Assembly: GCA_048772705.1 (NCBI GenBank)
Contig: JBLWGC010000230.1
Span: 124,001-188,000, forward strand
From: Leidyana gryllorum EB-2025a
Taxonomy: Eukaryota > Protista > Apicomplexa
Length of the DNA: 64,000 bases
Direction: 5' to 3'
Under the pieces are notes generated by a model. It had not been told where the DNA came from. It made no database searches and was given only the letters and a program-made list of their open reading frames with translations. Below are positions 7,402-28,990 of this stretch, piece after piece; the stretch's first letter is position 1; the number at the start of each line of letters is the position of its first letter. The translations under genes and the position numbers were made by a program.

Positions 7402-10400
7402 ATGAAGCTGCTATGGGCCGCAGCTGCAACTGCAGCTTCGACCTGCGCGCAGTCTATTTGTTATGCTCCCGCCCCCTACCGGATCAACAATTGTGTTCCC
7501 TGTGAACAACGTGTATCATGGAATGAAAATCTTTGTCAAGTTGGATTCTATCAACTGCCTTGTGCTGCCACGGTGGATGAGTGTTGTACCGCCCCTACCA
7601 ATAATAATCAAATCAGTGATCAAGCTGAATGCCTGGCGGGAAGTGAAACGGGGTTAGACCCGGCTCCCCGATGTGAATATGCAGTGTCACGCAACACAGA
7701 GTACACCAACGAGGAATGTGTTGATTTATGCGAACAATGGAATGCACTGTCTCCCAACGTCCCCCAAGACCTTCAAGATGATTTCAATGAGCATTGTTAT
7801 GAACAACGCGGCCCTGGAGACTGTTTTGATCGATGGATCTATGGCTATGGCGATGGACAACTGGCCTCCATTGACGATGTTTACTACACAACTGACACAG
7901 CAGCGGAGTGTCAGACATTATGTCAACAGGAACCAGATTGCTTGGGATTCTTTTATCGTGTTGACAAGAAGCAATGTGGGTTGAAAAATATCTCAATGGT
8001 GACGGATGCTATCCAACAACCCACTGAAAACGGAGCTGTGATCGACACCGACATATGCAATTATAACCAGGAGTATGCGTGCGATTACCTGTACAAATGC
8101 GCGGAATGCGACGGCGTTCGTCGCTGCGTCTGGGAGTCCACAGCGCACATCGCTGGTCCGAAGTACTGTGGTCAGGATCTTGATGTTTGTGATCCAATCC
8201 CACCGTGGTTCACATCTACCACGCAGTGTCCAACCGAACCGCCTACCACAGCAGCACCACAAACTACCGTAGTCGAAACTACCACCACAACCGAGGAGAC
8301 GACCACCACCACAGAAGAGCCGACCACTTCTACTGAAGAGACAACGACAACTACAGAGGAAACTACCACGACAACCGAGGAGACAACCACCACCACAGAA
8401 GAGCCGACCACTTCTACTGAAGAGACAACGACAACTACAGAGGAAACTACCACGACAACTGAGGAGACAACGACAACCACTGAAGAAACTACAACCACTA
8501 CAGAACCCGAGACTACGACAGAAGTGGAAACGACCACTGCTGCTCCCGAGGAAACTACTACCACCACTCAAGAAACGACAACCACTACCGAGCCCGAAAC
8601 TACCACGGAAGCGGAAACGACCACTGCAGCTCCTGAGGAGACAACTACCACCACTGAAGAAACAACAACCACGACAGAGCCCGAGACCACGACAGAAGCG
8701 GAAACGACCACAGCTGCTCCTGAGGAGACAACTACCACCACTGAAGAAACTACAACCACTACAGAACCCGAGACTACGACAGAAGCGGAAACGACCACTG
8801 CTGCTCCTGAGGAGACAACTACCACCACTGAAGAAACTACAACCACTACAGAACCGGAGACTACGACAGAAGCGGAGACAACCACTGCTGCTCCTGAGGA
8901 GACAACTACCACCACTGAAGAAACAACAACCACGACAGAACCCGAGACTACGACGGAAGCGGAAACAACCACTGCTGCTCCTGAGGAGACAACTACCACC
9001 ACTGAAGAAACTACCACCACTACAGAACCCGAGACCACTACAGAAGCGGAAACAACCACTGCTGCTCCTGAGGAGACAACTACCACCACTGAAGAAACAA
9101 CAACCACGACAGAACCGGAGACCACGACAGAAGCGGAAACGACCACTGCAGCTCCTGAGGAGACAACTACCACCACTGAAGAAACAACAACCACGACAGA
9201 ACCCGAGACTACGACGGAAGCGGAAACAACCACTGCTGCTCCTGAGGAGACCACTACCACCACTGAAGAAACTACCACCACTACAGAACCCGAGACCACT
9301 ACAGAAGCGGAAACAACCACTGCTGCTCCTGAGGAGACAACTACCACCACTGAAGAAACAACAACCACGACAGAACCCGAGACTACGACGGAAGCGGAAA
9401 CAACCACTGCTGCTCCTGAGGAGACCACTACCACCACTGAAGAAACTACCACCACTACAGAACCCGAGACCACCACAGAAGTGGAAACGACCACTGCAGC
9501 TCCTGAGGAGACAACTACCACCACTGAAGAAACAACAACCACGACAGAACCCGAGACCACGACAGAAGCGGAAACGACCACTGCAGCTCCTGAGGAGACC
9601 ACTACCACCACTGAAGAGACAACAACCACGACAGAACCCGAAACTACGACGGAAGCGGAAACGACCACTGCAGCTCCTGAGGAGACCACTACCACCACCG
9701 AAGAAACTACCACCACTACAGAGCCCGAGACCACTACAGAAGCGGAAACAACCACTGCTGCTCCTGAGGAGACCACTACCACCACTGAAGAAACCACAAC
9801 CACTACAGAACCGGAGACTACGACAGAAGGGGAAACGACCACTGCTGCTCCCGAGGAGACAACTACCACCACTGAAGAGACTACAACCACGACAGAACCG
9901 GAGACTACGACAGAAGCGGAAACGACCACTGCAGCTCCTGAGGAGACAACTACCACCACTGAAGAAACAACAACCACGACAGAACCCGAGACTACGACGG
10001 AAGCGGAAACAACCACTGCTGCTCCTGAGGAGACCACTACCACCACTGAAGAAACTACCACCACTACAGAACCCGAGACCACTACAGAAGCGGAAACAAC
10101 CACTGCTGCTCCTGAGGAGACAACTACCACCACTGAAGAAACAACAACCACGACAGAACCCGAGACTACGACGGAAGCGGAAACAACCACTGCTGCTCCT
10201 GAGGAGACCACTACCACCACTGAAGAAACTACCACCACTACAGAACCCGAGACCACCACAGAAGTGGAAACGACCACTGCAGCTCCTGAGGAGACAACTA
10301 CCACCACTGAAGAAACAACAACCACGACAGAACCCGAGACCACGACAGAAGCGGAAACGACCACTGCAGCTCCTGAGGAGACCACTACCACCACTGAAGA

Positions 10401-13400
10401 AACAACAACCACGACAGAACCCGAGACAACAACGGAAGCGGAAACCACCACTGCTGCTGCTGAGGAGACAACCACCACCACTGAAGCAACGACCACCACT
10501 ACGGAACCCGAGACCACGACCGAAGCGGAAACGACCACTGCTGCTCCTGAGGAGACAACTACCACCACTGAAGAAACCACAACCACTACAGAACCCGAGA
10601 CCACGACAGAAGCGGAAACGACCACTGCTGCTCCTGAGGAGACCACTACCACCACTGAAGAAACCACAACCACTACAGAACCGGAGACTACGACAGAAGG
10701 GGAAACGACCACTGCTGCTCCCGAGGAGACAACTACCACCACTGAAGAGACTACAACCACGACAGAACCGGAGACTACGACAGAAGCGGAAACGACCACT
10801 GCTGCTCCTGAGGAGACAACTACCACCACTGAAGAAACCACAACCACTACAGAACCCGAGACCACTACAGAAGCGGAAACAACCACTGCTGCTCCTGAGG
10901 AGACAACTACCACCACTGAAGAAACAACCACCACGACAGAACCCGAGACTACGACGGAAGCGGAAACAACCACTGCTGCTCCCGAGGAGACAACTACCAC
11001 CACTGAAGAAACTACAACCACTACAGAACCCGAGACCACTACAGAAGCGGAAACAACCACTGCTGCTCCTGAGGAGACAACTACCACCACTGAAGAGACT
11101 ACAACCACGACAGAACCCGAGACTACGACAGAAGCGGAAACAACCACTGCTGCTCCTGAGGAAACAACTACCACCACTGAAGAAACTACAACCACTACAG
11201 AACCGGAGACTACGACAGAAGCGGAAACGACCACTGCTGCTCCCGAGGAGACAACTACCACCACTGAAGAAACTACAACCACTACAGAACCGGAGACTAC
11301 GACAGAAGCGGAAACAACCACTGCTGCTCCTGAGGAGACAACTACCACCACTGAAGAAACTACAACTACTACAGAACCCGAGACCACGACAGAAGCGGAA
11401 ACAACCACTGCTGCTCCTGAGGAGACAACTACCACCACTGAAGAAACTACAACCACTACGGAACCCGAGACCACGACAGAGGCGGAAACGACCACTGCTG
11501 CTCCTGAGGAGACAACTACCACCACTGAAGAAACTACAACCACTACAGAACCCGAGACTACGACAGAAGCGGAAACGACCACTGCTGCTCCCGAGGAGAC
11601 AACTACCACCACTGAAGAAACCACAACCACGACAGAACCGGAGACCACGACAGAAGCGGAAACGACCACTGCTGCTCCTGAGGAGACAACTACCACCACT
11701 GAAGAAACTACAACCACTACAGAACCCGAGACCACTACAGAAGCGGAAACAACCACTGCTGCTCCTGAGGAGACAACTACCACCACTGAAGAAACAACCA
11801 CCACGACAGAACCCGAGACTACGACAGAAGCGGAAACGACCACTGCTGCTCCTGAGGAGACAACTACCACCACTGAAGAAACTACAACCACTACAGAACC
11901 CGAGACCACTACAGAAGCGGAAACGACCACTGCTGCTCCTGAGGAGACAACTACCACCACTGAAGAAACAACAACCACGACAGAACCCGAGACAACAACG
12001 GAAGCGGAAACCACCACTGCTGCTGCTGAGGAGACAACAACCACCACTGAAGAGACTACAACCACCACAGAACCGGAGACTACGACAGAAGCGGAAACGA
12101 CCACTGCTGCTCCTGAGGAGACAACTACCACCACTGAAGAGACTACGACCACTACTGAACCAGAGACTACGACAGAAGCGGAAACGACCACTGCTGCTCC
12201 TGAGGAGACAACTACCACCACTGAAGAGACTACAACCACCACAGAACCGGAGACTACGACAGAAGCGGAAACGACCACTGCTGCTCCTGAGGAGACAACT
12301 ACCACCACTGAAGAGACTACGACCACTACGGAACCCGAGACTACGACAGAAGCGGAAACGACCACTGCGGCTCCTGAGGAGACAACTACCACCACTGAAG
12401 AGACTACGACCACTACGGAACCCGAGACTACGACAGAAGCGGAAACGAGCACTGCTGCTCCTGAGGAGACAACTACCACCACTGAAGAGACTACGACCAC
12501 TACTGAACCAGAGACTACTACAGAAGCGGAAACGACCACTGCTGCTTCTGAGGAGACAACCACCACCACTGAAGAGACTACGACCACTACTGAACCAGAG
12601 ACTACGACAGAAGCGGAAACGACCACTGCTGCTCCTGAGGAGACAACTACCACCACTGAAGAGACTACGACCACTACTGAACCAGAGACTACGACAGAAG
12701 CGGAAACGACCACTGCTGCTCCTGAGGAGACAACTACCACCACTGAAGAGACTACAACCACCACAGAACCGGAGACTACGACAGAAGCGGAAACGACCAC
12801 TGCTGCTCCTGAGGAGACAACTACCACCACTGAAGAGACTACGACCACTACGGAACCCGAGACTACGACAGAAGCGGAAACAACCACTGCTGCTCCTGAG
12901 GAGACAACTACCACCACTGAAGAAACTACGACCACTACTGAACCAGAGACTACGACAGAAGCGGAAACGACCACTGCTGCTCCTGAGGAGACAACTACCA
13001 CCACTGAAGAGACTACGACCACTACTGAACCAGAGAGTACGACAGAAGCGGAAACGACCACTGCTGCTCCTGAGGAGACAACTACCACCACAGAACCGGA
13101 GACTACGACAGAAGCGGAAACGACCACTGCTGCTCCTGAGGAGACAACTACCACCACTGAAGAGACTACGACCACTACGGAACCCGAGACTACGACAGAA
13201 GCGGAAACAACCACTGCTGCTCCTGAGGAGACAACTACCACCACTGAAGAAACTACAACCACTACAGAACCGGAGACTACGACAGAAGCGGAAACGACCA
13301 CTGCTGCTCCCGAGGAGACAACTACCACCACTGAAGAAACTACAACCACTACAGAACCGGAGACTACGACAGAAGCGGAAACAACCACTGCTGCTCCTGA

Positions 13401-16400
13401 GGAGACAACTACCACCACTGAAGAAACTACAACTACTACAGAACCCGAGACCACGACAGAAGCGGAAACAACCACTGCTGCTCCTGAGGAGACAACTACC
13501 ACCACTGAAGAAACTACAACCACTACGGAACCCGAGACCACGACAGAAGCGGAAACGACCACTGCTGCTCCTGAGGAGACAACTACCACCACTGAAGAAA
13601 CTACAACCACTACAGAACCCGAGACTACGACAGAAGCGGAAACGACCACTGCTGCTCCCGAGGAGACAACTACCACCACTGAAGAAACCACAACCACGAC
13701 AGAACCGGAAACGACCACTGCTGCTCCTGAGGAGACAACTACCACCACTGAAGGAACTACAACCACTACAGAACCCGAGACCACGTCAGAACCGGAAACG
13801 ACCACTGCTGCTCCTGAGGAGACAACTACCACCACTGAAGAAACCACAACCACGACAGAACCCGAGACCACGACAGAAGCGGAAACAACCACTGCTGCTC
13901 CTGAGGAGACAACTACCACCACCGAAGAAATAACAACCACAACGGAACCCGAGACCACGACAGAAGCGGAAACGACCACTGCTGCTCCCGAGGAGACAAC
14001 TACCACCACTGAAGAAACTACAACCACTACAGAACCCGAGACTACGACAGAAGCGGAAACAACCACTGCTGCTCCTGAGGAGACAACTACCACCACTGAA
14101 GAAACTACAACCACTACCAAACCGGACACCACGACAGAAGCGGAAACAACCACTGCTGCTCCGGAGGAGACAACTACCACCACTGAAGAAACCACAACCA
14201 CGACAGAACCCGAGACCACGACAGAAGCGGAAACAACCACTGCTGCTCCTGAGGAGACAACTACCACCACCGAAGAAATAACAACCACAACGGAACCCGA
14301 GACCACGGCAGAAGCGGAAACGACCACTGCTGCTCCTGAGGAGACAACTACCACCACTGAAGAAACTACAACCACTACAGAACCCGAGACTACGACAGAA
14401 GCGGAAACGACCACTGCTGCTCCTGAGCAGACAACTACCACCACTGAAGAAACAACAACCACTACCGAACGGGAGACCACGACAGAAGCGGAAACAACCA
14501 CTGCTGCTCCCGAGGAGACAACTACCACCACTGAAGAAACTACAACCACTTCAGAACCGGAGACTACGACAGAAGCGGAAACAACCACTGCTGCTCCTGA
14601 GGAGACGACTACCACCACTGAAGAAACTACAACTACTACAGAACCCGAGACCACGACAGAAGCGGAAACAACCACTGCTGCTCCTGAGGAGACAACTACC
14701 ACCACTGAAGAAACTACAACCACTACGGAACCCGAGACCACGACAGAAGCGGAAACGACCACTGCTGCTCCTGAGGAGACAACTACCACCACTGAAGAAA
14801 CTACAACCACTACAGAACCCGAGACTACGACAGAAGCGGAAACAACCACTGCTGCTCCTGAGGAGACAACTACCACCACTGAAGAAACTACAACCACTAC
14901 AGAACCCGAGACCACGACAGAAGCGGAAACAACCACTGCTGCTCCTGAGGAGACAACTACCACCACTGAAGAAACTACAACCACTACAGAACCCGAGACC
15001 ACGACAGAAGCGGAAACAACCACTGCTGCTCCTGAGGAGACAACTACCACCACTGAAGAAACTACAACCACTACGGAACCCGAGACCACGACAGAAGCGG
15101 GAACGACCACTGCTCCTGAGGAGACAACTACCACCACTGAAGAAACTACAACCACTACAGAACCCGAGACTACGACAGAAGCGGAAACAACCACTGCTGC
15201 TCCTGAGGAGACAACTACCACCACTGAAGAAACTACAACTACTACAGAACCCGAGACCACGACAGAAGCGGAAACAACCACTGCTGCTCCTGAGGAGACA
15301 ACTACCACCACTGAAGAAACTACAACCACTACGGAACCGGAGACTACGACAGAAGCGGAAACGACCACTGCTGCTCCTGAGGAGACAACTACCACCACTG
15401 AAGAAACAACAACCACTACCGAACCGGAGACCACGACAGCAGCGGAAACAACCACTGCTGCTCCTGAGGAGACAACTACCACCACTGAAGAAACTACAAC
15501 CACTACGGAACCGGAGACTACCACAGAAGCGGAAACGACCACAGCTGCTCCTGAAGAAACAACTACAACCACTGAAGAGACTACAACCACTACTGAACCA
15601 GAGACTACGACAGAAGCGGAGACAACCACTGCTGCTTCAGAGGAGACAACCACCACCACTGAGGAGACTACCACCACCACAGAACCGGAGGCTACGACAG
15701 AAGCGGAAACGACCACTGCTGCTCCTGAGGAGACAACTACCACCACTGAAGAGACTACGACCACTACTGAACCAGAGACTACTACAGAAGCGGAGACGAC
15801 AACTGCTGCTCCAGAGGAGACAACTACCACCACTGAAGAGACTACCACCACTACTGAACCAGAGACTACTACAGAAGCGGAGACGACCACTGCTGCTCCA
15901 GAGGCGACAACCACCAGCACTGAGGAAACTACCACCACTACCGAGCCCGAAACTACGACAGAAGCGGAGACGACCACTGCTGCTCCAGAAGAGACGACCA
16001 CCACCACTGAAGAAACTACAACCACTACAGAACCAGAGACTACGACAGAAGCGGAAACAACCACTGCTGCTCCTGAGGAGACAACCACCACCTCAGAAGA
16101 AACTACAACCACTACAGAACCGGAGACTACCACAGAAGCGGAAACGACCACTGCTGCTCCTGAGGAGACAACTACCACCACTACCGAGCCCGAGACCACT
16201 ACAGAAGCAGAAACGACCACTGCTGCTCCTGAGGAGACAACTACCACCACCGAAGAAACTACAACAACTACAGAACCGGAGACTACGACAGAAGCGGAAA
16301 CGACCACTGCTGCTCCTGAGGAGACATCTACCCCCACCGAAGAGACTACAACCACTACAGAACCGGAGACTACGACAGAAGCGGAAACGACCACTGCTGC

Positions 16401-18174
16401 TCCTGAGGAGACAACTACCACCACCGAAGAAACTACAACCACTACAGAACCGGAGACTACGACAGAAGCGGAAACGACCACTGCTGCTCCTGAGGAGACA
16501 ACTACCACCACTACCGAGCCCGAGACCACTACAGAAGCAGAAACGACCACTGCTGCTCCTGAGGAGACAACTACCACCACCGAAGAAACTACAACAACTA
16601 CAGAACCGGAGACTACGACAGAAGCGGAAACGACCACTGCTGCTCCTGAGGAGACAACTACCCCCACCGAAGAGACTACAACCACTACAGAACCGGAGAC
16701 TACGACAGAAGCGGAAACGACCACTGCTGCTCCTGAGGAGACAACTACCACCACCGAAGAAACTACAACCACTACAGAACCGGAGACTACGACAGAAGCG
16801 GAAACGACCACTGCTCCAGAGGAGACAACTACCACCACTGAAGAGACCACAACCACTACAGAACCCGAGACGACGACAGAAGCGGAAACAACCACTGCTG
16901 CTCCTGAGGAGACCACCACAGAGGCCGAGACAACCACAACATTCCAAGCTGACACCACCACCACCGAACCTGAGGCCACTACCGAAGTTGAGACGACTAC
17001 TGCACCCGAAGAGACCACCACCACACAAGCTGAGACAACCACCGTCACCGAAGAGAGTACTACTGAGCCAACGACCACCACTGAAGAGACAACAGTGCCC
17101 GAAACCACAACAGAGCCCGGCTTGACCACCCAATCCGAAACTACGCACACCACTGGTTACCCAACTCCAGGGCCACCAACCGAGCCTCAAACTACCGAAC
17201 CCGAGACAACTGAGCCAGCAACAACTGAATATCCAACTACGGAACCCGAAACTACTCAGCCTGAGACCACTGTACCGACTGTGCCGACTGTACCTCCAAC
17301 TCGACCGCCGACCACCACGACGACACGTCGACCACATCCTCCGCCCCACCCACCGATCCACCCAGGTCATCCTTGGTGGAAACCGCACCATCATAAGCAT
17401 GACAAACACCCATCTCCTGGACCAAAGCCACCTCCGATCAAACCTCCCCCCCCACCTCCGCACCCGCATCCACCTCCGCACCCGCACCCCCATCCTCATC
17501 CCCATCCCCATCCTCATTCCCATTCAAAGACACACGACCACCATACCAAAAACGGACATACTCACAAGGACCCCTTCCCAGCGCACGAACACACACATCA
17601 TTACAGCAACCATCATCCAGTTGTAGACTCCCATGCCAAGCTTCCCCACCACTCCATGTCACATGGTTTCAAAGGACCGGCAGATTACAAATCATTAACA
17701 CACGACCTGTTCAAAGATCCCTTATCACACACTAAGCATATTTCATCACATGATGATTACCATCGATTGTTACCCACACTATTCGGACCTGCAGAACAAC
17801 TTCCTGGGTTGCTTGGGGGTCTTTTCTCAGAAGGCAAGATAGCCCCTGACACTTCAATTGGATCACAAGCCTTACGATCACCTGCGGACTATGCCTCTCT
17901 CCTCTCAGAAGGCAAGAAAGCCCCTGACACTTCAATTGGAACACAAGCCTCACGATCACCTGCGGACTATGCCTCTCTCCTCTCTCTACCCAATAATTCA
18001 CGCTTGAAGACTCCGTTGAAGAGAGTGTTTGGCGACAGATCCGAGGAGGCGAACCCGGTGGCCGGAGATATGCCGATAACGGCAGACGCACCCTCAACTG
18101 CTGACACAACAGATGGCACTTCACAGGTGGACACCTGGAACAGGTTGAGTCGTTTCTACGATCAGTACGTTTGA
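7402..18174 (+). CDS. Giant secreted mucin-like protein (3590 aa): signal peptide, Cys-rich region with PAN/apple-like module, Thr/Glu repeat stalk, Pro/His-rich C-terminus
   Basis: Single ORF; AECQTLCQQEPDCLGFFY..KQCGLK..HIAGPKYC matches the PAN/apple pattern; no C-terminal transmembrane segment visible. Confidence 0.9.
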   Translation: MKLLWAAAATAASTCAQSICYAPAPYRINNCVPCEQRVSWNENLCQVGFYQLPCAATVDECCTAPTNNNQISDQAECLAGSETGLDPAPRCEYAVSRNTEYTNEECVDLCEQWNALSPNVPQDLQDDFNEHCYEQRGPGDCFDRWIYGYGDGQLASIDDVYYTTDTAAECQTLCQQEPDCLGFFYRVDKKQCGLKNISMVTDAIQQPTENGAVIDTDICNYNQEYACDYLYKCAECDGVRRCVWESTAHIAGPKYCGQDLDVCDPIPPWFTSTTQCPTEPPTTAAPQTTVVETTTTTEETTTTTEEPTTSTEETTTTTEETTTTTEETTTTTEEPTTSTEETTTTTEETTTTTEETTTTTEETTTTTEPETTTEVETTTAAPEETTTTTQETTTTTEPETTTEAETTTAAPEETTTTTEETTTTTEPETTTEAETTTAAPEETTTTTEETTTTTEPETTTEAETTTAAPEETTTTTEETTTTTEPETTTEAETTTAAPEETTTTTEETTTTTEPETTTEAETTTAAPEETTTTTEETTTTTEPETTTEAETTTAAPEETTTTTEETTTTTEPETTTEAETTTAAPEETTTTTEETTTTTEPETTTEAETTTAAPEETTTTTEETTTTTEPETTTEAETTTAAPEETTTTTEETTTTTEPETTTEAETTTAAPEETTTTTEETTTTTEPETTTEVETTTAAPEETTTTTEETTTTTEPETTTEAETTTAAPEETTTTTEETTTTTEPETTTEAETTTAAPEETTTTTEETTTTTEPETTTEAETTTAAPEETTTTTEETTTTTEPETTTEGETTTAAPEETTTTTEETTTTTEPETTTEAETTTAAPEETTTTTEETTTTTEPETTTEAETTTAAPEETTTTTEETTTTTEPETTTEAETTTAAPEETTTTTEETTTTTEPETTTEAETTTAAPEETTTTTEETTTTTEPETTTEVETTTAAPEETTTTTEETTTTTEPETTTEAETTTAAPEETTTTTEETTTTTEPETTTEAETTTAAAEETTTTTEATTTTTEPETTTEAETTTAAPEETTTTTEETTTTTEPETTTEAETTTAAPEETTTTTEETTTTTEPETTTEGETTTAAPEETTTTTEETTTTTEPETTTEAETTTAAPEETTTTTEETTTTTEPETTTEAETTTAAPEETTTTTEETTTTTEPETTTEAETTTAAPEETTTTTEETTTTTEPETTTEAETTTAAPEETTTTTEETTTTTEPETTTEAETTTAAPEETTTTTEETTTTTEPETTTEAETTTAAPEETTTTTEETTTTTEPETTTEAETTTAAPEETTTTTEETTTTTEPETTTEAETTTAAPEETTTTTEETTTTTEPETTTEAETTTAAPEETTTTTEETTTTTEPETTTEAETTTAAPEETTTTTEETTTTTEPETTTEAETTTAAPEETTTTTEETTTTTEPETTTEAETTTAAPEETTTTTEETTTTTEPETTTEAETTTAAPEETTTTTEETTTTTEPETTTEAETTTAAPEETTTTTEETTTTTEPETTTEAETTTAAAEETTTTTEETTTTTEPETTTEAETTTAAPEETTTTTEETTTTTEPETTTEAETTTAAPEETTTTTEETTTTTEPETTTEAETTTAAPEETTTTTEETTTTTEPETTTEAETTTAAPEETTTTTEETTTTTEPETTTEAETSTAAPEETTTTTEETTTTTEPETTTEAETTTAASEETTTTTEETTTTTEPETTTEAETTTAAPEETTTTTEETTTTTEPETTTEAETTTAAPEETTTTTEETTTTTEPETTTEAETTTAAPEETTTTTEETTTTTEPETTTEAETTTAAPEETTTTTEETTTTTEPETTTEAETTTAAPEETTTTTEETTTTTEPESTTEAETTTAAPEETTTTTEPETTTEAETTTAAPEETTTTTEETTTTTEPETTTEAETTTAAPEETTTTTEETTTTTEPETTTEAETTTAAPEETTTTTEETTTTTEPETTTEAETTTAAPEETTTTTEETTTTTEPETTTEAETTTAAPEETTTTTEETTTTTEPETTTEAETTTAAPEETTTTTEETTTTTEPETTTEAETTTAAPEETTTTTEETTTTTEPETTTAAPEETTTTTEGTTTTTEPETTSEPETTTAAPEETTTTTEETTTTTEPETTTEAETTTAAPEETTTTTEEITTTTEPETTTEAETTTAAPEETTTTTEETTTTTEPETTTEAETTTAAPEETTTTTEETTTTTKPDTTTEAETTTAAPEETTTTTEETTTTTEPETTTEAETTTAAPEETTTTTEEITTTTEPETTAEAETTTAAPEETTTTTEETTTTTEPETTTEAETTTAAPEQTTTTTEETTTTTERETTTEAETTTAAPEETTTTTEETTTTSEPETTTEAETTTAAPEETTTTTEETTTTTEPETTTEAETTTAAPEETTTTTEETTTTTEPETTTEAETTTAAPEETTTTTEETTTTTEPETTTEAETTTAAPEETTTTTEETTTTTEPETTTEAETTTAAPEETTTTTEETTTTTEPETTTEAETTTAAPEETTTTTEETTTTTEPETTTEAGTTTAPEETTTTTEETTTTTEPETTTEAETTTAAPEETTTTTEETTTTTEPETTTEAETTTAAPEETTTTTEETTTTTEPETTTEAETTTAAPEETTTTTEETTTTTEPETTTAAETTTAAPEETTTTTEETTTTTEPETTTEAETTTAAPEETTTTTEETTTTTEPETTTEAETTTAASEETTTTTEETTTTTEPEATTEAETTTAAPEETTTTTEETTTTTEPETTTEAETTTAAPEETTTTTEETTTTTEPETTTEAETTTAAPEATTTSTEETTTTTEPETTTEAETTTAAPEETTTTTEETTTTTEPETTTEAETTTAAPEETTTTSEETTTTTEPETTTEAETTTAAPEETTTTTTEPETTTEAETTTAAPEETTTTTEETTTTTEPETTTEAETTTAAPEETSTPTEETTTTTEPETTTEAETTTAAPEETTTTTEETTTTTEPETTTEAETTTAAPEETTTTTTEPETTTEAETTTAAPEETTTTTEETTTTTEPETTTEAETTTAAPEETTTPTEETTTTTEPETTTEAETTTAAPEETTTTTEETTTTTEPETTTEAETTTAPEETTTTTEETTTTTEPETTTEAETTTAAPEETTTEAETTTTFQADTTTTEPEATTEVETTTAPEETTTTQAETTTVTEESTTEPTTTTEETTVPETTTEPGLTTQSETTHTTGYPTPGPPTEPQTTEPETTEPATTEYPTTEPETTQPETTVPTVPTVPPTRPPTTTTTRRPHPPPHPPIHPGHPWWKPHHHKHDKHPSPGPKPPPIKPPPPPPHPHPPPHPHPHPHPHPHPHSHSKTHDHHTKNGHTHKDPFPAHEHTHHYSNHHPVVDSHAKLPHHSMSHGFKGPADYKSLTHDLFKDPLSHTKHISSHDDYHRLLPTLFGPAEQLPGLLGGLFSEGKIAPDTSIGSQALRSPADYASLLSEGKKAPDTSIGTQASRSPADYASLLSLPNNSRLKTPLKRVFGDRSEEANPVAGDMPITADAPSTADTTDGTSQVDTWNRLSRFYDQYV
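8460..16915 (+). repeat. Coding tandem repeat, 87-nt unit (29 aa EETTTTTEETTTTTEPETTTEAETTTAAP), roughly 97 copies
   Basis: Directly visible; copy number estimated as span/87; occasional shortened units. Confidence 0.95.
17824..17985 (+). repeat. Two copies of a 78-nt coding unit (SEGKxAPDTSIGxQAxRSPADYASLL)
   Basis: Direct duplication visible in both DNA and protein. Confidence 0.9.
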
Positions 18175-18271: not shown

Positions 18272-18733
18272 TCAGAAATAGAATCCGCCATAGATGCCGG
18301 GGTAGCCATACCCGTAAGCGGGGTAGCCGTAGGGGTAGACGGGGTAGCCATAGCCATAGCCGCCATAGCCGCCATAGCCCCAGCCGCCGTAGCCGCCACG
18401 GTGCTTGTGGCCGAGCTTGCGAGCCTCAGGGAGCTCGGGGAGCTCGAGTCCAGCTTCGGTAGTCTCAGCTTCCTGTTCAGCCTCAGTGGTCTCGGCTTCC
18501 TCCTCCTGCTGACGACGGACCTCAGGCTCGGTGGTTTCGACTTCGGTGGTCTCAACTTCCTCCTCCTGCTGACGACGGATGGGAGCCTCAGTAGTCTCAG
18601 CCTCGGCCTCGGTGGTCTCGGCCTCAACCTCCTGCTTGTGTGACTTCTTCAAACCGAGGGAGCGGGGCTTGGGAGGCTTAGCGGTAGCGGTGGCCGCGAG
18701 AGCAGCGATGGCAATCAATTGGGTGATCTTCAT
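18272..18733 (-). CDS. Secreted precursor-like protein with acidic spacers and a Gly/Tyr/Pro-rich C-terminal peptide
   Basis: MKITQLIAIAALAATATA signal; RSL, two RRQQEEE units, RKL, then GGYGGWGYGGYGGYGYGYPVYPYGYPAY.. Confidence 0.85.
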   Translation of the reverse strand: MKITQLIAIAALAATATAKPPKPRSLGLKKSHKQEVEAETTEAEAETTEAPIRRQQEEEVETTEVETTEPEVRRQQEEEAETTEAEQEAETTEAGLELPELPEARKLGHKHRGGYGGWGYGGYGGYGYGYPVYPYGYPAYGYGYPGIYGGFYF

Positions 18734-26103: not shown

Positions 26104-26283
26104 TTAAAATTAGGGTAAACTATAGTCACATTCGGATACCGCCAACACCCAATTCGATTTCGGTGACATTTACAACAGCGATGACAGACCTTTGACACCG
26201 TTCTCAGTGGCTTAGAAGTGATTTAGCCTCATAATCGGTGCATGAGCTTCGCGCCAAATCGCCAGTAGGTGGGGACCCCACAC

Positions 26284-26655
26284 ATGAAAGGAATATCACT
26301 AATCTGTACTGCGTTGGCCGCTCTCACATCCGCGGCTCCGGCCGAACAGAGAGCCCTCAGGTACGTCCCCCTATGATGCCACACACCACACACTCCACCC
26401 AGTCCTTGGGGCTTTGGATTTGGAGGCCCACACTTTGGCTTCGGGATTGGGTTCGGTGGCCATCATGGCTATGGTAGAGGCTTCTATGGACGTCCTTTCT
26501 ATGGCCGACCCTACGGCTATGGCGGTATTCGCCCTTATCGCTACAACTATTTCCGCGCTTATGAGAGAGGAGGCGGTCGCGAGGAGGCTTACCTCGAAGG
26601 TCTCCGTGAGGGTGAGGCCCTGGCCGAGGCCGAGGACGACTTTTATCGTCGTTGA
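26284..26655 (+). CDS. Small secreted Gly/Phe/Tyr-rich protein (two exons, not in ORF track)
   Basis: MKGISLICTALAALTSAAPAEQRAL|S; intron 26361-26402; PWGFGFGGPHFGFGIGFGGHHGYGRGFYGRPFYGRPYGYGG..EEAYLEGLREGEALAEAEDDFYRR*. Confidence 0.8.
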
Positions 26656-26828
26656 ATGAAAAAGCTTTTACATTTGTCTTTGATCGAATCGAATTGACCT
26701 GATTTCACTTCGGCCCATCATTTCTATATGATGGGGTTTGATTAGCATCGCTTAAGCCCACAAGGGACCCCACTGTCGCCTTATGCACGCAACATGCTTT
26801 TTGAGGGGTTGCACTGATCAATCTCACG

Positions 26829-27394
26829 ATGAAATTGGTGACTGTTTTCGCGATCTTCGCTGCTGTGGCCACTGCTGGCCCCAGCTCGCTGCGTTCTTTA
26901 CAGTGAGTGAAAGGCTGAATTTTGCCCTCATCTGAGACGATCTTAGAGAGCGTGACGACCGTATGGCTCGCCCCCGTCCGTATGAGCCCGGATTCGGACT
27001 CCCAGAAGGCGGTGACCGCCGTCCCGAGCGTCCGGAAGGACCCGACCGCCGCCCCGAGCGGCCCGAAGGACCAGATCGTCGTCCCGATCGCCGTCCTGAA
27101 CGCCCCGATCGTCGCCCCGGCCCTGACCGTCGTCCCGGTCCCGAAGGCCCCCCTGAGCGCACCTACCCGGTGTATCCTCCTCGGCCCCCTCGCCGTAGAC
27201 CCGGCTACAGACCTCCTCCCCCCGGCCGCCCCCGTCCCCCTCGCCCGGTTCCCACCTACCCAGTTACCCCCTGGATTCCCCCTACCTACGTTCCCGGCCC
27301 CATAATCACCACTACCGGAACTGGCAGCATTGGTGCTGCTTTCGAGGCTGGTTATCTCGCTGGTCAAGCATCTGCTGGACGCCGCGTTTTTTGA
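26829..27394 (+). CDS. Small secreted Pro/Arg-rich protein (PDRRPER repeats) with RSLQE motif
   Basis: MKLVTVFAIFAAVATAGPSSLRSL|QE; intron 26903-26946 joins in frame to ORF 26963-27394. Confidence 0.82.
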
Positions 27395-27695
27395 ATTTTA
27401 TTCGGGTTAATGAGCTGATGAAACACTATTTGCCCTATCAAAGTAACTGGGCCTGGAGAGATGCAGCCAATATCGGAGAACTGATTGCACATGGGATTTT
27501 AGCCGCCCTAACAGGCAGCGGAAGCTTAATGAAAGAAGGGGCACTCAGCTTGGTGGCTCTATGCACCATAACGTTTACCGCCTTCATTGCTATTGTCGGA
27601 ATATGGTCTTGGCGCCGCGACGCAAGTGATCGGAGGTTCTGGCGGGAGTATTTGTCCCGGAGTAGATCCGGGTATTATTGACTCGATGCGACAAA

Positions 27696-27717
27696 CCCCA
27701 TGTAAAAAACGCGTGCA
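27696..27717. promoter_or_regulatory. Putative cis-element pair CCCCAT + CGCGTGCA upstream of secreted gene 27752
   Basis: Same motif pair within 60 nt of the ATG. Confidence 0.45.
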
Positions 27718-27751
27718 CTTGCCTATACGCCTTGCAAACACGCATCGCAAC

Positions 27752-28294
27752 ATGAGGCTAACCCTGGCGCTGCTGACAGCTCTCGCCCTCAACTCCTCCC
27801 TCGCGGCCCCCACAAACAGACAATCCTCGAAGACCACTTCGTCTCGGCACACTCAGAGCAACCGTCGTCGGAGCCAGGGAAGTACACAACAAAATGCCAC
27901 TGCGGTGGCGGTCAACAACGTTCATGTGACCGTTGAGTGAGTCTCCATTTCAACCGGGACCCCGCACACTCCAATCCATTACAGAATCCGCAACAGGAAT
28001 AAGAACAAGAAGAAGACCACCAACACAAAACCACCCAGGAACCCCCAAGTGCCAACCAAATCCCCAAACGCTTCGCCCCACATTGCGAACTCGCAGATTG
28101 AGGATGCGATGATGACTGGAGGCGACGTCCAACCGTCTTTTCCCCTCATATCTGATGGAACTGGCCATTTCGGTCCCTTGTTTGACCACCGACATGGCTT
28201 TGTAGCACCTCTCAACCAAGGCATGCCCTATGCACAGCAGTTCTTTCGGGAAAGACCCTGGCTCGTCCCTCCAGGCGCACTTCGGCCTTTTTGA
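27752..28294 (+). CDS. Small secreted basic protein
   Basis: MRLTLALLTALALNSSLAAP signal; intron 27937-27984 joins in frame to ORF 28049-28294. Confidence 0.75.
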
Positions 28295-28377
28295 TAAAAT
28301 GTTGAGTGTGTGAGCCTGTTGCGCCCCCCACTATGGGGGTGTGGGCTCACAGACTTTCACGTGCATTATCAACCAAC

Positions 28378-28990
28378 ATGAAATTCTTGCCAATTCTTAT
28401 CACTGCGGCTTTGGCCCAAGGGCCTCACAGAATGTACGTATATTGTTATTTGTTGAATATATAGCACGGTACAGGCCCCCATCTGGCCGTTCCCCTGTAG
28501 GTGTCCACACCCCGCATAACGCTGCTGGACATCTTTCCCATCACGGACCCAAGCCTCAGCCCCGCGGACCGCCTCATCATCCTCCGCACCGCTTGCTCCA
28601 ACCTTTTGGACCTCCGCCTCCGTTGAGCGCTCACGGTCACGGACCCCACGGTCACGGACCCCACGGCCATGGCCCTCACGGTCACGGACCTCACGGTCAT
28701 GGACCCCATCGTCATCACGGTCATGGTCCTCATGGTCACGGCCACGGCCATGGTCACGGAGGTCCCTCCGGTGGTCCCCACATTCACCCACGCGAACTGC
28801 AGTGAGTGATGCAGAGCACTTCTGATGTGAGTCATCCGTTCGTAGAGCCTTCGAAGGCGCTTATATTCACCAATCAGGCCGCCCTTGGGAGCAATTCGGC
28901 TGGCATGGGCACAATGACCAAGAGGCCAACTTTTTGACTCCTCTTTATGGTCACGGTTTCTATCCGTCAGTAGGCCAATTCAACAACTAG
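28378..28990 (+). CDS. Secreted His/Gly/Pro-rich protein (HGHGP repeats) with RLLQ and RELQ motifs, three exons
   Basis: MKFLPILITAALAQGPHR; introns 28434-28474 and 28802-28845; last exon QAFEGAYIHQSGRPWEQFGWHGHNDQEANFLTPLYGHGFYPSVGQFNN*. Confidence 0.78.

Follow-up and report, generated by a model that had tools for sequence, protein, structure and literature searches.

A signal-peptide and RxL module shared by three neighbouring genes for predicted small secreted proteins in Leidyana gryllorum

The stretch of DNA analysed here (the window; 64,000 nucleotides (nt) of Leidyana gryllorum EB-2025a, assembly GCA_048772705.1, contig JBLWGC010000230.1, positions 124,001 to 188,000 of the forward strand) carries at 26284-28990 a cluster of four same-direction genes, g1 to g4, for small, signal-peptide-bearing proteins with predicted lengths of 109-173 amino acids (aa), and a further gene, g0, lies upstream on the opposite strand (Table 1). 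The predicted N-termini of g0, g1 and g2 combine a signal peptide with an eight-residue pro-piece that ends in an RxL (Arg-x-Leu) tripeptide, and their alignment indicates that the three 5' ends are likely related by local duplication, i.e., that they go back to one ancestral end.

An earlier note on this DNA had described four co-oriented signal-peptide genes, each with a different compositional bias, and phase-2 introns directly after RAL, RSL and REL. The frames, N-termini and compositions fit the first part of this description, and the gene models, which are themselves predictions, fit the second, with 26361, 26903 and 28802 as the first intron bases in g1, g2 and g4. All five predicted introns of the cluster are GT..AG introns of phase 2 and 41-48 nt in length, and three of the five junctions lie directly after an RxL. 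Read-through of the g1 intron meets a TGA after four codons, and the spliced g2 protein is predicted to read RSLQE across its junction. In g3 a 60-nt alternative with another acceptor likewise leaves the frame open, and intron 1 of g4 must be 41 nt because the 67-nt alternative breaks the frame. The list of open reading frames (ORFs) misses the second exons of g1 and g4, since neither has a start codon of its own.

The frames of g1 to g4 are coding, as is evident from the synonymous-only variation of the repeats: at the variable sites of the in-register DNA repeats in g2 and g4, eight out of eight differences are synonymous third positions. The two 30-nt units encoding DRRPERPEGP in g2 differ at four sites, every one a synonymous third position, and variation among the five in-register 15-nt HGHGP units of g4 is confined to third positions. 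All four N-termini display a hydrophobic core and small residues at -3/-1, the signal-peptide calls being made by a heuristic on these features (core hydrophobicity, -3/-1 residues) rather than by a dedicated predictor. The mature regions contain no Cys and differ in composition, g1 being rich in Gly (27%), Tyr (13%), Arg (13%) and Phe (11%), g2 in Pro (27%) and Arg (20%), and g4 in Gly (21%), His (21%) and Pro (18%), with g3 of mixed basic character (Lys, Asn, Thr).

The 3' end of g4 allows a second reading, in which the gene stops at the TGA at 28803-28805 with a protein ending in RELQ, and the 47-codon third exon is spurious; the REL|Q junction would then vanish, leaving only two junctions after an RxL. 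The donor GTGAGT indeed overlaps this in-frame TGA, and an open frame of 47 codons is not rare by chance; however, both the donor and the acceptor of intron 2 are canonical, a length of 44 nt is typical for the genome, and exon 3 carries on the His/Gly/aromatic composition of exon 2, and we regard the early stop as unlikely.

Table 1 Predicted genes, exons, introns and other features of the window (positions in the window)
Feature	Position	Strand	Description
Mucin-like secreted protein	7402-18174	+	3590 aa, Thr 47%, Glu 23%
g0	18272..18733	-	Intronless, 153 aa; signal peptide, KPPKPRSL, ETTEAE repeats, RKL, Gly/Tyr-rich tail
GGGACCCCAC	26272..26281	+	2 nt upstream of g1 ATG
g1	26284-26360 + 26403-26655	+	109 aa
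g1 exon 1	26284..26360	+	Signal peptide and pro-piece APAEQRAL, then 2 nt of Ser codon
g1 intron	26361..26402	+	42 nt, GTACGT..CAG, phase 2, after RAL
g1 exon 2	26403..26655	+	Gly/Tyr/Phe/Arg-rich region, acidic tail, stop; 92-codon open frame
GGGACCCCAC	26764..26773	+	55 nt upstream of g2 ATG
g2	26829-26902 + 26947-27394	+	173 aa
g2 exon 1	26829..26902	+	Signal peptide and pro-piece GPSSLRSL, then 2 nt of Gln codon
g2 intron	26903..26946	+	44 nt, GTGAGT..TAG, phase 2, after RSL; in-frame TGA at donor
g2 exon 2	26947..27394	+	DRRPERPEGP repeats, Pro/Arg-rich stretch, short Ala/Gly tail
87-codon ORF	27418-27681	+	One clear transmembrane helix, then RRD; between g2 and g3
g3	27752-27936 + 27985-28294	+	164 aa
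g3 exon 1	27752..27936	+	Signal peptide and Ser/Thr/Asn/Arg-rich stretch; no RxL
g3 intron	27937..27984	+	48 nt, GTGAGT..CAG, phase 2, after VTV (no RxL)
g3 exon 2	27985..28294	+	Basic Lys/Asn stretch and non-repetitive C-terminal part
g4	28378-28433 + 28475-28801 + 28846-28990	+	166 aa
g4 exon 1	28378..28433	+	Signal peptide MKFLPILITAALA plus QGPHR
g4 intron 1	28434..28474	+	41 nt, GTACGT..CAG, phase 2
g4 exon 2	28475..28801	+	His/Gly/Pro-rich, HGHGP repeats; RLL|Q inside, REL at end
g4 intron 2	28802..28845	+	44 nt, GTGAGT..TAG, phase 2, after REL; or gene end at TGA 28803-28805
g4 exon 3	28846..28990	+	47 codons, His/Gly/aromatic-rich, stop; least certain exon of the cluster

The pro-pieces KPPKPRSL (g0), APAEQRAL (g1) and GPSSLRSL (g2) align over eight residues as xPxxxR[A/S]L, where x is any residue. 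Across the module as a whole, i.e., signal peptide and pro-piece, the invariant positions are M, K, A, A, A(-1), P(+2), R(+6) and L(+8), numbered from the predicted signal-peptidase site, with Ala or Ser at +7, and the offset of the RxL from this site is identical in all three proteins (+6 to +8). The module corresponds exactly to exon 1 in g1 and g2, where it is closed by the phase-2 intron of 42-44 nt; in g0 there is no intron at this point. Behind the module, the acidic ETTEAE repeats of g0 echo the repeat of the adjoining mucin-like gene, RKL stands just before a basic stretch, and the tail contains YGYGYP units. The module is absent from g3 and g4.

Searches for the module were made by DNA pattern and by profile across the 15.5 Mb assembly, and in a 264-kb sample (G000:C230:124001-388000, the window and 200 kb beyond it) that also served for the intron census described below. 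A whole-genome DNA pattern for the module gave 12 matches versus 1 for the control, with in-frame signal peptides only at g0, g1 and g2, and a profile built from the three members retrieved only these same genes from 15.5 Mb. The module is limited to one local family of three neighbouring genes, which lie within 8.2 kb. When each member was left out in turn and the profile was run against the six-frame-translated sample, the omitted member was always the best match outside the training set (E 0.0067-0.11), and the signal-peptide score of g1 against g2 falls in the top 0.7% of signal-peptide pairs.

The mature exons of the cluster are pairwise unlike in BLASTP and shuffled Smith-Waterman comparisons, which gave one nominal p = 0.01 in 13 tests. 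Paralogy of all four cluster genes was considered and rejected, as the mature exons show nothing beyond this single value. A likeness of the C-terminal AFEAGY, AYLEG and AFEGAY segments noticed by eye, and a supposed shared helix, are below significance. The earlier note had proposed a signal and pro-RxL cassette placed before unrelated mature exons; this description holds for g1 and g2, and for g0 in intronless form, and does not extend to g3, g4 or the rest of the genome.

The introns of the cluster are ordinary for this genome. Bridging of ORFs in the 264-kb sample yielded 175 candidate introns, with a length peak at 42-56 nt, GTRAG (89%) or GTACG (11%) donors, and 61, 41 and 73 introns in phases 0, 1 and 2, respectively; phase 2 is the commonest (42%). 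Running the same search on the reversed sequence puts the false positives at ~5-20%, depending on threshold. The filter required that read-through meet a stop, and may slightly favour phase 2, since a GTRAG donor in phase 2 always gives an in-frame TAA or TGA; the phase-2 share may be slightly raised for this reason. A CTRAY-type branch-site match was found in none of the five introns of g1 to g4. The splice-site consensus was ruled out as a source of the RxL tripeptides: the exon side of the candidate donors is nearly devoid of consensus, with only a G at -1 in ~42%, so splice signals do not favour Arg-x-Leu.

The earlier note had also described introns placed exactly at RxL processing-like motifs, and had called for a genome-wide test of enrichment. 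The part of such a test made here, which comprises the 264-kb census and whole-genome patterns, gave no excess, and a genome-wide rule tying introns to RxL is not supported. Of the 175 candidate junctions, 3 come directly after an RxL, namely those of g2 and g4 and one elsewhere, i.e., 1/173 outside the cluster against a background of 0.89% per tripeptide in exon flanks. Within the sample, none of about six other signal-peptide first exons ends in RxL, and RxL is not enriched at residues 18-60 of signal-peptide ORFs (8 RxL versus 7 LxR). The whole-genome pattern ATG, 48-78 nt, [R/S]x[L/F], 2 nt, GTRNGT has 378 matches (the first 100 of them listed) versus 345 in the backwards control; with a Met-Lys/Arg start the numbers are 24 and 27, and among the listed matches of this narrower pattern only g1 and g2 read as in-frame signal peptides.

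These counts bear directly on the notion of a mobile signal and pro-RxL exon, shuffled before interchangeable mature exons throughout a wider family, with introns lying systematically after RxL. Such an exon would explain why the module equals exon 1 in g1 and g2 while their second exons are unrelated; a plasmepsin V orthologue is present in the genome (see below), and exon shuffling of pre-sequences has been proposed for Plasmodium genes with an RxL-type export motif (PMC1431722). Against it stand the lack of an excess in the two pattern counts, the presence of just two such exons among the listed matches, and the lack of a further signal-peptide first exon ending in RxL in the sample; moreover, the module occurs in g0 with no intron attached, the RxL junction of g4 does not follow a signal peptide, and the first exons do not resemble one another at the DNA level. 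We consider a mobile exon of this kind very improbable.

If the junctions were independent, the chance of an RxL at three of five (p = 0.0089 each) would be about 7e-6 per cluster. The RxL junctions of g1 and g2 count as one event, however, since both belong to the related 5' module, and an RxL at two of four junctions should turn up by chance about once in a genome with some 8000 introns. The REL|Q junction of g4 needs no special explanation; it is situated near the C-terminus, not behind a signal peptide, and is most likely a coincidence. The striking part of the locus, introns apparently aimed at RxL, thus probably reduces to one inherited junction and one coincidence.

A further link between g1 and g2 is found upstream of their start codons, where copies of the 10-mer GGGACCCCAC occur 492 nt apart. 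The exact 10-mer has 33 copies genome-wide versus 12 for the backwards control, and the remaining copies of this type within the 264 kb sampled do not precede signal-peptide genes. Three matches to the related form GGGACCCC[A/G]C lie in the window versus 0.24 expected, all in the cluster (26272-26281, 26764-26773 and, inside the g3 intron, 27956-27965). GTGCA is seen, on either strand, at -46, -46, -39 and -17 from the starts at 26284, 26829, 27752 and 28378, respectively, and ACCCC is also common to the 60-nt regions upstream of all four starts. Random sets of four 60-mers share 0.09 five-mers on average. GTGCA may be a common cis-element; it occurs in the same range at 13% of long-ORF starts, and not before g0 or the mucin-like gene.

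The earlier note had named Plasmodium plasmepsin V and Toxoplasma ASP5 as proteases that cleave after RxL, and a search of the genome for an orthologue found one. The frame L006:1054-2253:- (G000:C33, about 292.1-293.3 kb) matches P. vivax plasmepsin V (4zl4) at E 8e-53, compared with 1e-7 for other aspartic proteases (chymosin and similar), and aligns with it over about 300 residues; the gene is split over exons. Plasmodium plasmepsin V is the best solved relative of this putative protease, which fits an apicomplexan source. Both catalytic Asp residues are kept (DSGS, DSGT), as are the flap Tyr and Glu (Y-S-E versus Y-C-E in Plasmodium) and Phe219 and Gln222 (LFxxQQ), with Val227 replaced by Ile. 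Simulations of the P. falciparum enzyme pair the P3 Arg with Glu179 and Gln222, and the P1 Leu with Tyr177, Phe219 and Val227 (PMC4987639). Cleavage at RxL is possible in this organism, since its plasmepsin V/ASP5-type protease keeps residues of both the Arg and the Leu pocket. A second plasmepsin V-like gene, L013:1180-3148:+ (G000:C177, about 31.6-33.6 kb), matched only plasmepsin V (E 3e-5), and there are at least four further pepsin-family loci in the genome.

The RxL sites concerned are RAL in g1, RSLQE in g2, RSL and RKL in g0, and RLL and REL in g4; none is RRL. Conservation of P, R, [A/S] and L amid otherwise variable pro-piece residues argues for some function, of which cleavage is the likeliest, and suggests that the pro-piece is a maturation signal with a putative cut after the RxL. 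Plasmepsin V is described as a general secretory maturase, which also acts on proteins that are not exported (PMC10900883). As a separate observation, Gln follows RxL three times, in RSLQ (26892-26903), RLLQ (about 28596-28607) and RELQ (28791-28802), and a Gln would likewise become N-terminal at the predicted signal-peptidase site of g4. A cut after those RxL sites would give products that start with Gln and could form pyroglutamate.

The spliced models were searched exon by exon for relatives. Pfam gave no match for any exon of g1 to g4, and a search for paralogues within the genome, limited to g1 exon 2 and g3 exon 2, returned none but the queries themselves. Relatives of g3 exon 2 were not found by word search, and HMMER against 1.84 billion representatives gave one spurious repeat match; g1 exon 2 reached scores of 0.81 or less in the ESM Atlas, which are uninformative. 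The word search with g4 exon 2 returned only GPHGHGP-repeat proteins, i.e., repeat look-alikes, and the search with g0 only GYGYP-repeat proteins (P0004, P0006, P0007).

By analogy of composition, the products of g1 to g4 are most likely structural wall or matrix proteins. Small size, a signal peptide and an extreme bias towards His/Pro or Tyr, traits of coccidian wall-forming proteins, come together in g4 and g1, and a structural-matrix role is suggested because these Gly/Tyr-, Pro- and His-rich secreted proteins adjoin a mucin. The N-terminal domain of the latter is rich in Cys, its C-terminal stretch is rich in His and Pro, and about 3000 residues are taken up by Thr/Glu repeats that are nearly identical; the mucin-like gene accounts for the strong skew in AT and GC seen at 8-18 kb. 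PIG-A lies upstream of the cluster on the minus strand, with the mucin-like gene and g0 further upstream. The 87-codon ORF between g2 and g3 starts 24 nt past the g2 stop, ends 70 nt before the g3 start, and may be a fifth small gene of the cluster.

The same genes and the same processing could also supply soluble effector or antimicrobial-type peptides to the host gut, where cationic Gly/Tyr-, Pro/Arg- and His-rich peptides would have been paired with acidic pro-regions. In g0 the acidic ETTEAE region precedes a basic Gly/Tyr tail, g2 has a Pro/Arg-rich half, g1 combines a cationic core with an acidic tail, and the Pro/Arg-rich and Gly/Tyr-rich antimicrobial peptides of animals resemble such products. 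The searches found no homology to any named antimicrobial family, however, the 90-150 residues that follow the signal peptide are large for peptides of this kind, and a Gly-, Pro- and His-rich set next to a mucin would sooner be expected of a structural matrix; release as effectors appears distinctly unlikely to us.

Taken together, the cluster may be described as a set of lineage-specific genes for small, secreted, Cys-free, low-complexity proteins of a gregarine-like apicomplexan. In the scheme that we tentatively prefer, and to which we give somewhat less than an even chance as a whole, g0, g1 and g2 would descend from one ancestral 5' end composed of a signal peptide and the eight residues x-P-x-x-x-R-[A/S]-L, and g1 and g2 would probably have inherited their phase-2 intron together instead of acquiring it twice, independently, at an RxL. 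The mature regions behind the module would have diverged, or been replaced, beyond recognition. Cutting of the pro-piece after Leu in the endoplasmic reticulum (ER) by a plasmepsin V/ASP5-type protease is the likeliest mechanism of maturation, and the Gly/Tyr-, Pro/Arg- and His/Gly/Pro-rich proteins thus released would contribute to an extracellular wall or matrix, e.g., a gametocyst or oocyst wall or a surface coat. The splicing of these genes, the cleavage of their products, and their common descent and function are what we infer from these data.

Several observations weigh against this scheme. All five junctions are predictions from genomic sequence alone. A profile of g1 and g2 does not reach g0 at genome scale (E <= 10), no exon-1 DNA similarity was found among the four genes, and the putative homology of the module is not significant at genome scale; a common origin of the three 5' ends is not proven, since the exon-1 DNA shows no similarity. 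The full RxLxE form is present only in g2, the numbers of RxL in these proteins are barely above the composition-based expectation, and in g0, g1 and g2 the RxL lies 5 residues past the predicted signal-peptidase site (R at +6), closer than the distance of roughly 15-30 residues, counted from the signal sequence or its cleavage site, that is expected of such motifs. The argument for a structural role is one of composition: the searches run gave no sequence homology to Eimeria GAM22 or any named wall protein, and an animal-type haem peroxidase (An_peroxidase), as used in dityrosine cross-linking, was not found, a weak negative as the control genomes were silent too.

Part of this evidence would equally be expected if the genes were real and the RxL functionless, with the junction positions and the N-terminal likeness reflecting generic composition and chance in Arg-rich proteins. 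RxL before introns elsewhere is at background and is not enriched after signal peptides, the profile of two members fails to retrieve the third genome-wide, and mature regions and exon-1 DNA are unrelated. Coincidence does not, however, readily account for all three leave-one-out searches placing the omitted member first, for the proximity of the three genes and the lack of any other in-frame signal-peptide match to the module in the assembly, for the rare 10-mer upstream of both g1 and g2, or for the identical RxL offset in g0, g1 and g2. We therefore regard chance as a rather doubtful explanation of the locus, and retain descent from one 5' end as the preferred one.

That an enzyme of the plasmepsin V type truly cuts at xPxxxR[A/S]L, and that an extracellular gregarine matures its structural or wall proteins in this way, is a bolder claim, which we consider unlikely as it stands. 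If it is true, RxL processing would have begun as a general secretory maturation with a very short pro-piece, before the host-cell export seen in Plasmodium and Toxoplasma, and the intron that bounds the module in g1 and g2 would record the spread of a pre-pro module to new genes. Cutting of R-[A/S]-L by the plasmepsin V-like enzyme would represent an early-branching, non-export form of the processing associated with the Plasmodium and Toxoplasma export elements (PEXEL and TEXEL, respectively), with bearing on the origin of the malaria export signal. The products of these genes are further candidates for components of gregarine cyst or oocyst walls, the protein make-up of which is, to our knowledge, little known, and the genes themselves would be readily overlooked in annotation, as most of the coding sequence lacks a start codon of its own.

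Known systems resemble parts of this arrangement. Secreted GYGYP-repeat proteins (P0004, P0006, P0007), of which P0004 bears a signal peptide, contain a repeat of the YGYGYP type like that in the tail of g0; unlike g0, these nameless proteins are without the xPxxxR[A/S]L module, and the likeness is confined to the repeat. The protease proposed for Eimeria wall proteins is a subtilisin, not an enzyme of the plasmepsin V type. The coccidian Tyr-rich wall proteins (GAM56, GAM82, EtSWP1 and those of Toxoplasma) are made as precursors that undergo proteolysis and are cross-linked into walls. The predicted g0 and g1 products would likewise be secreted and are rich in Tyr and Gly (13% and 27%, respectively, in g1); g0 and g1 have no homology to these wall proteins, and an animal-type peroxidase was not found in the genome, the latter being a weak negative.

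A closer counterpart in size and composition is GAM22 of Eimeria, a wall-forming-body and oocyst-wall protein of 186 aa with a 19-aa signal peptide, 22% His and 15.6% Pro (PMC3896727). The predicted g4 protein (166 aa, signal peptide, 21% His and 18% Pro) is similar in these respects, and differs from GAM22 in the lack of detectable homology, in being Gly-rich with HGHGP repeats, and in having two predicted introns versus none.

Host-cell export of these proteins is not expected, because gregarines are mostly extracellular. On the side of processing, ASP5 is a clade-D aspartic protease that acts as a secretory-pathway maturase of secreted proteins (PMC8540915), and the pair of plasmepsin V-like genes in this genome, the second of which is the weaker match, recalls the ASP5/ASP7 pair of Toxoplasma. 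The motif here is R-[A/S]-L and not the RRL of TEXEL, dense-granule-type proteins are not involved, and cleavage is a prediction. In Plasmodium PEXEL genes, a phase-0 intron separates the signal sequence from the motif (PMC1431722), whereas the motif of g1 and g2 lies at the end of exon 1, ahead of the phase-2 intron, g0 being intronless. The gap of five residues is also shorter than the 24-28 residues between the signal-peptidase site and processed PEXELs behind classical signal peptides (PMC10900883), and the module family has only three members. In common with the Plasmodium system, an ER signal sequence is followed by an RxL, which in g2 (RSLQE) fits the RxLxE/Q/D consensus, the signal sequence of g1 and g2 is carried on a short first exon, and the genome has an orthologue of the protease.

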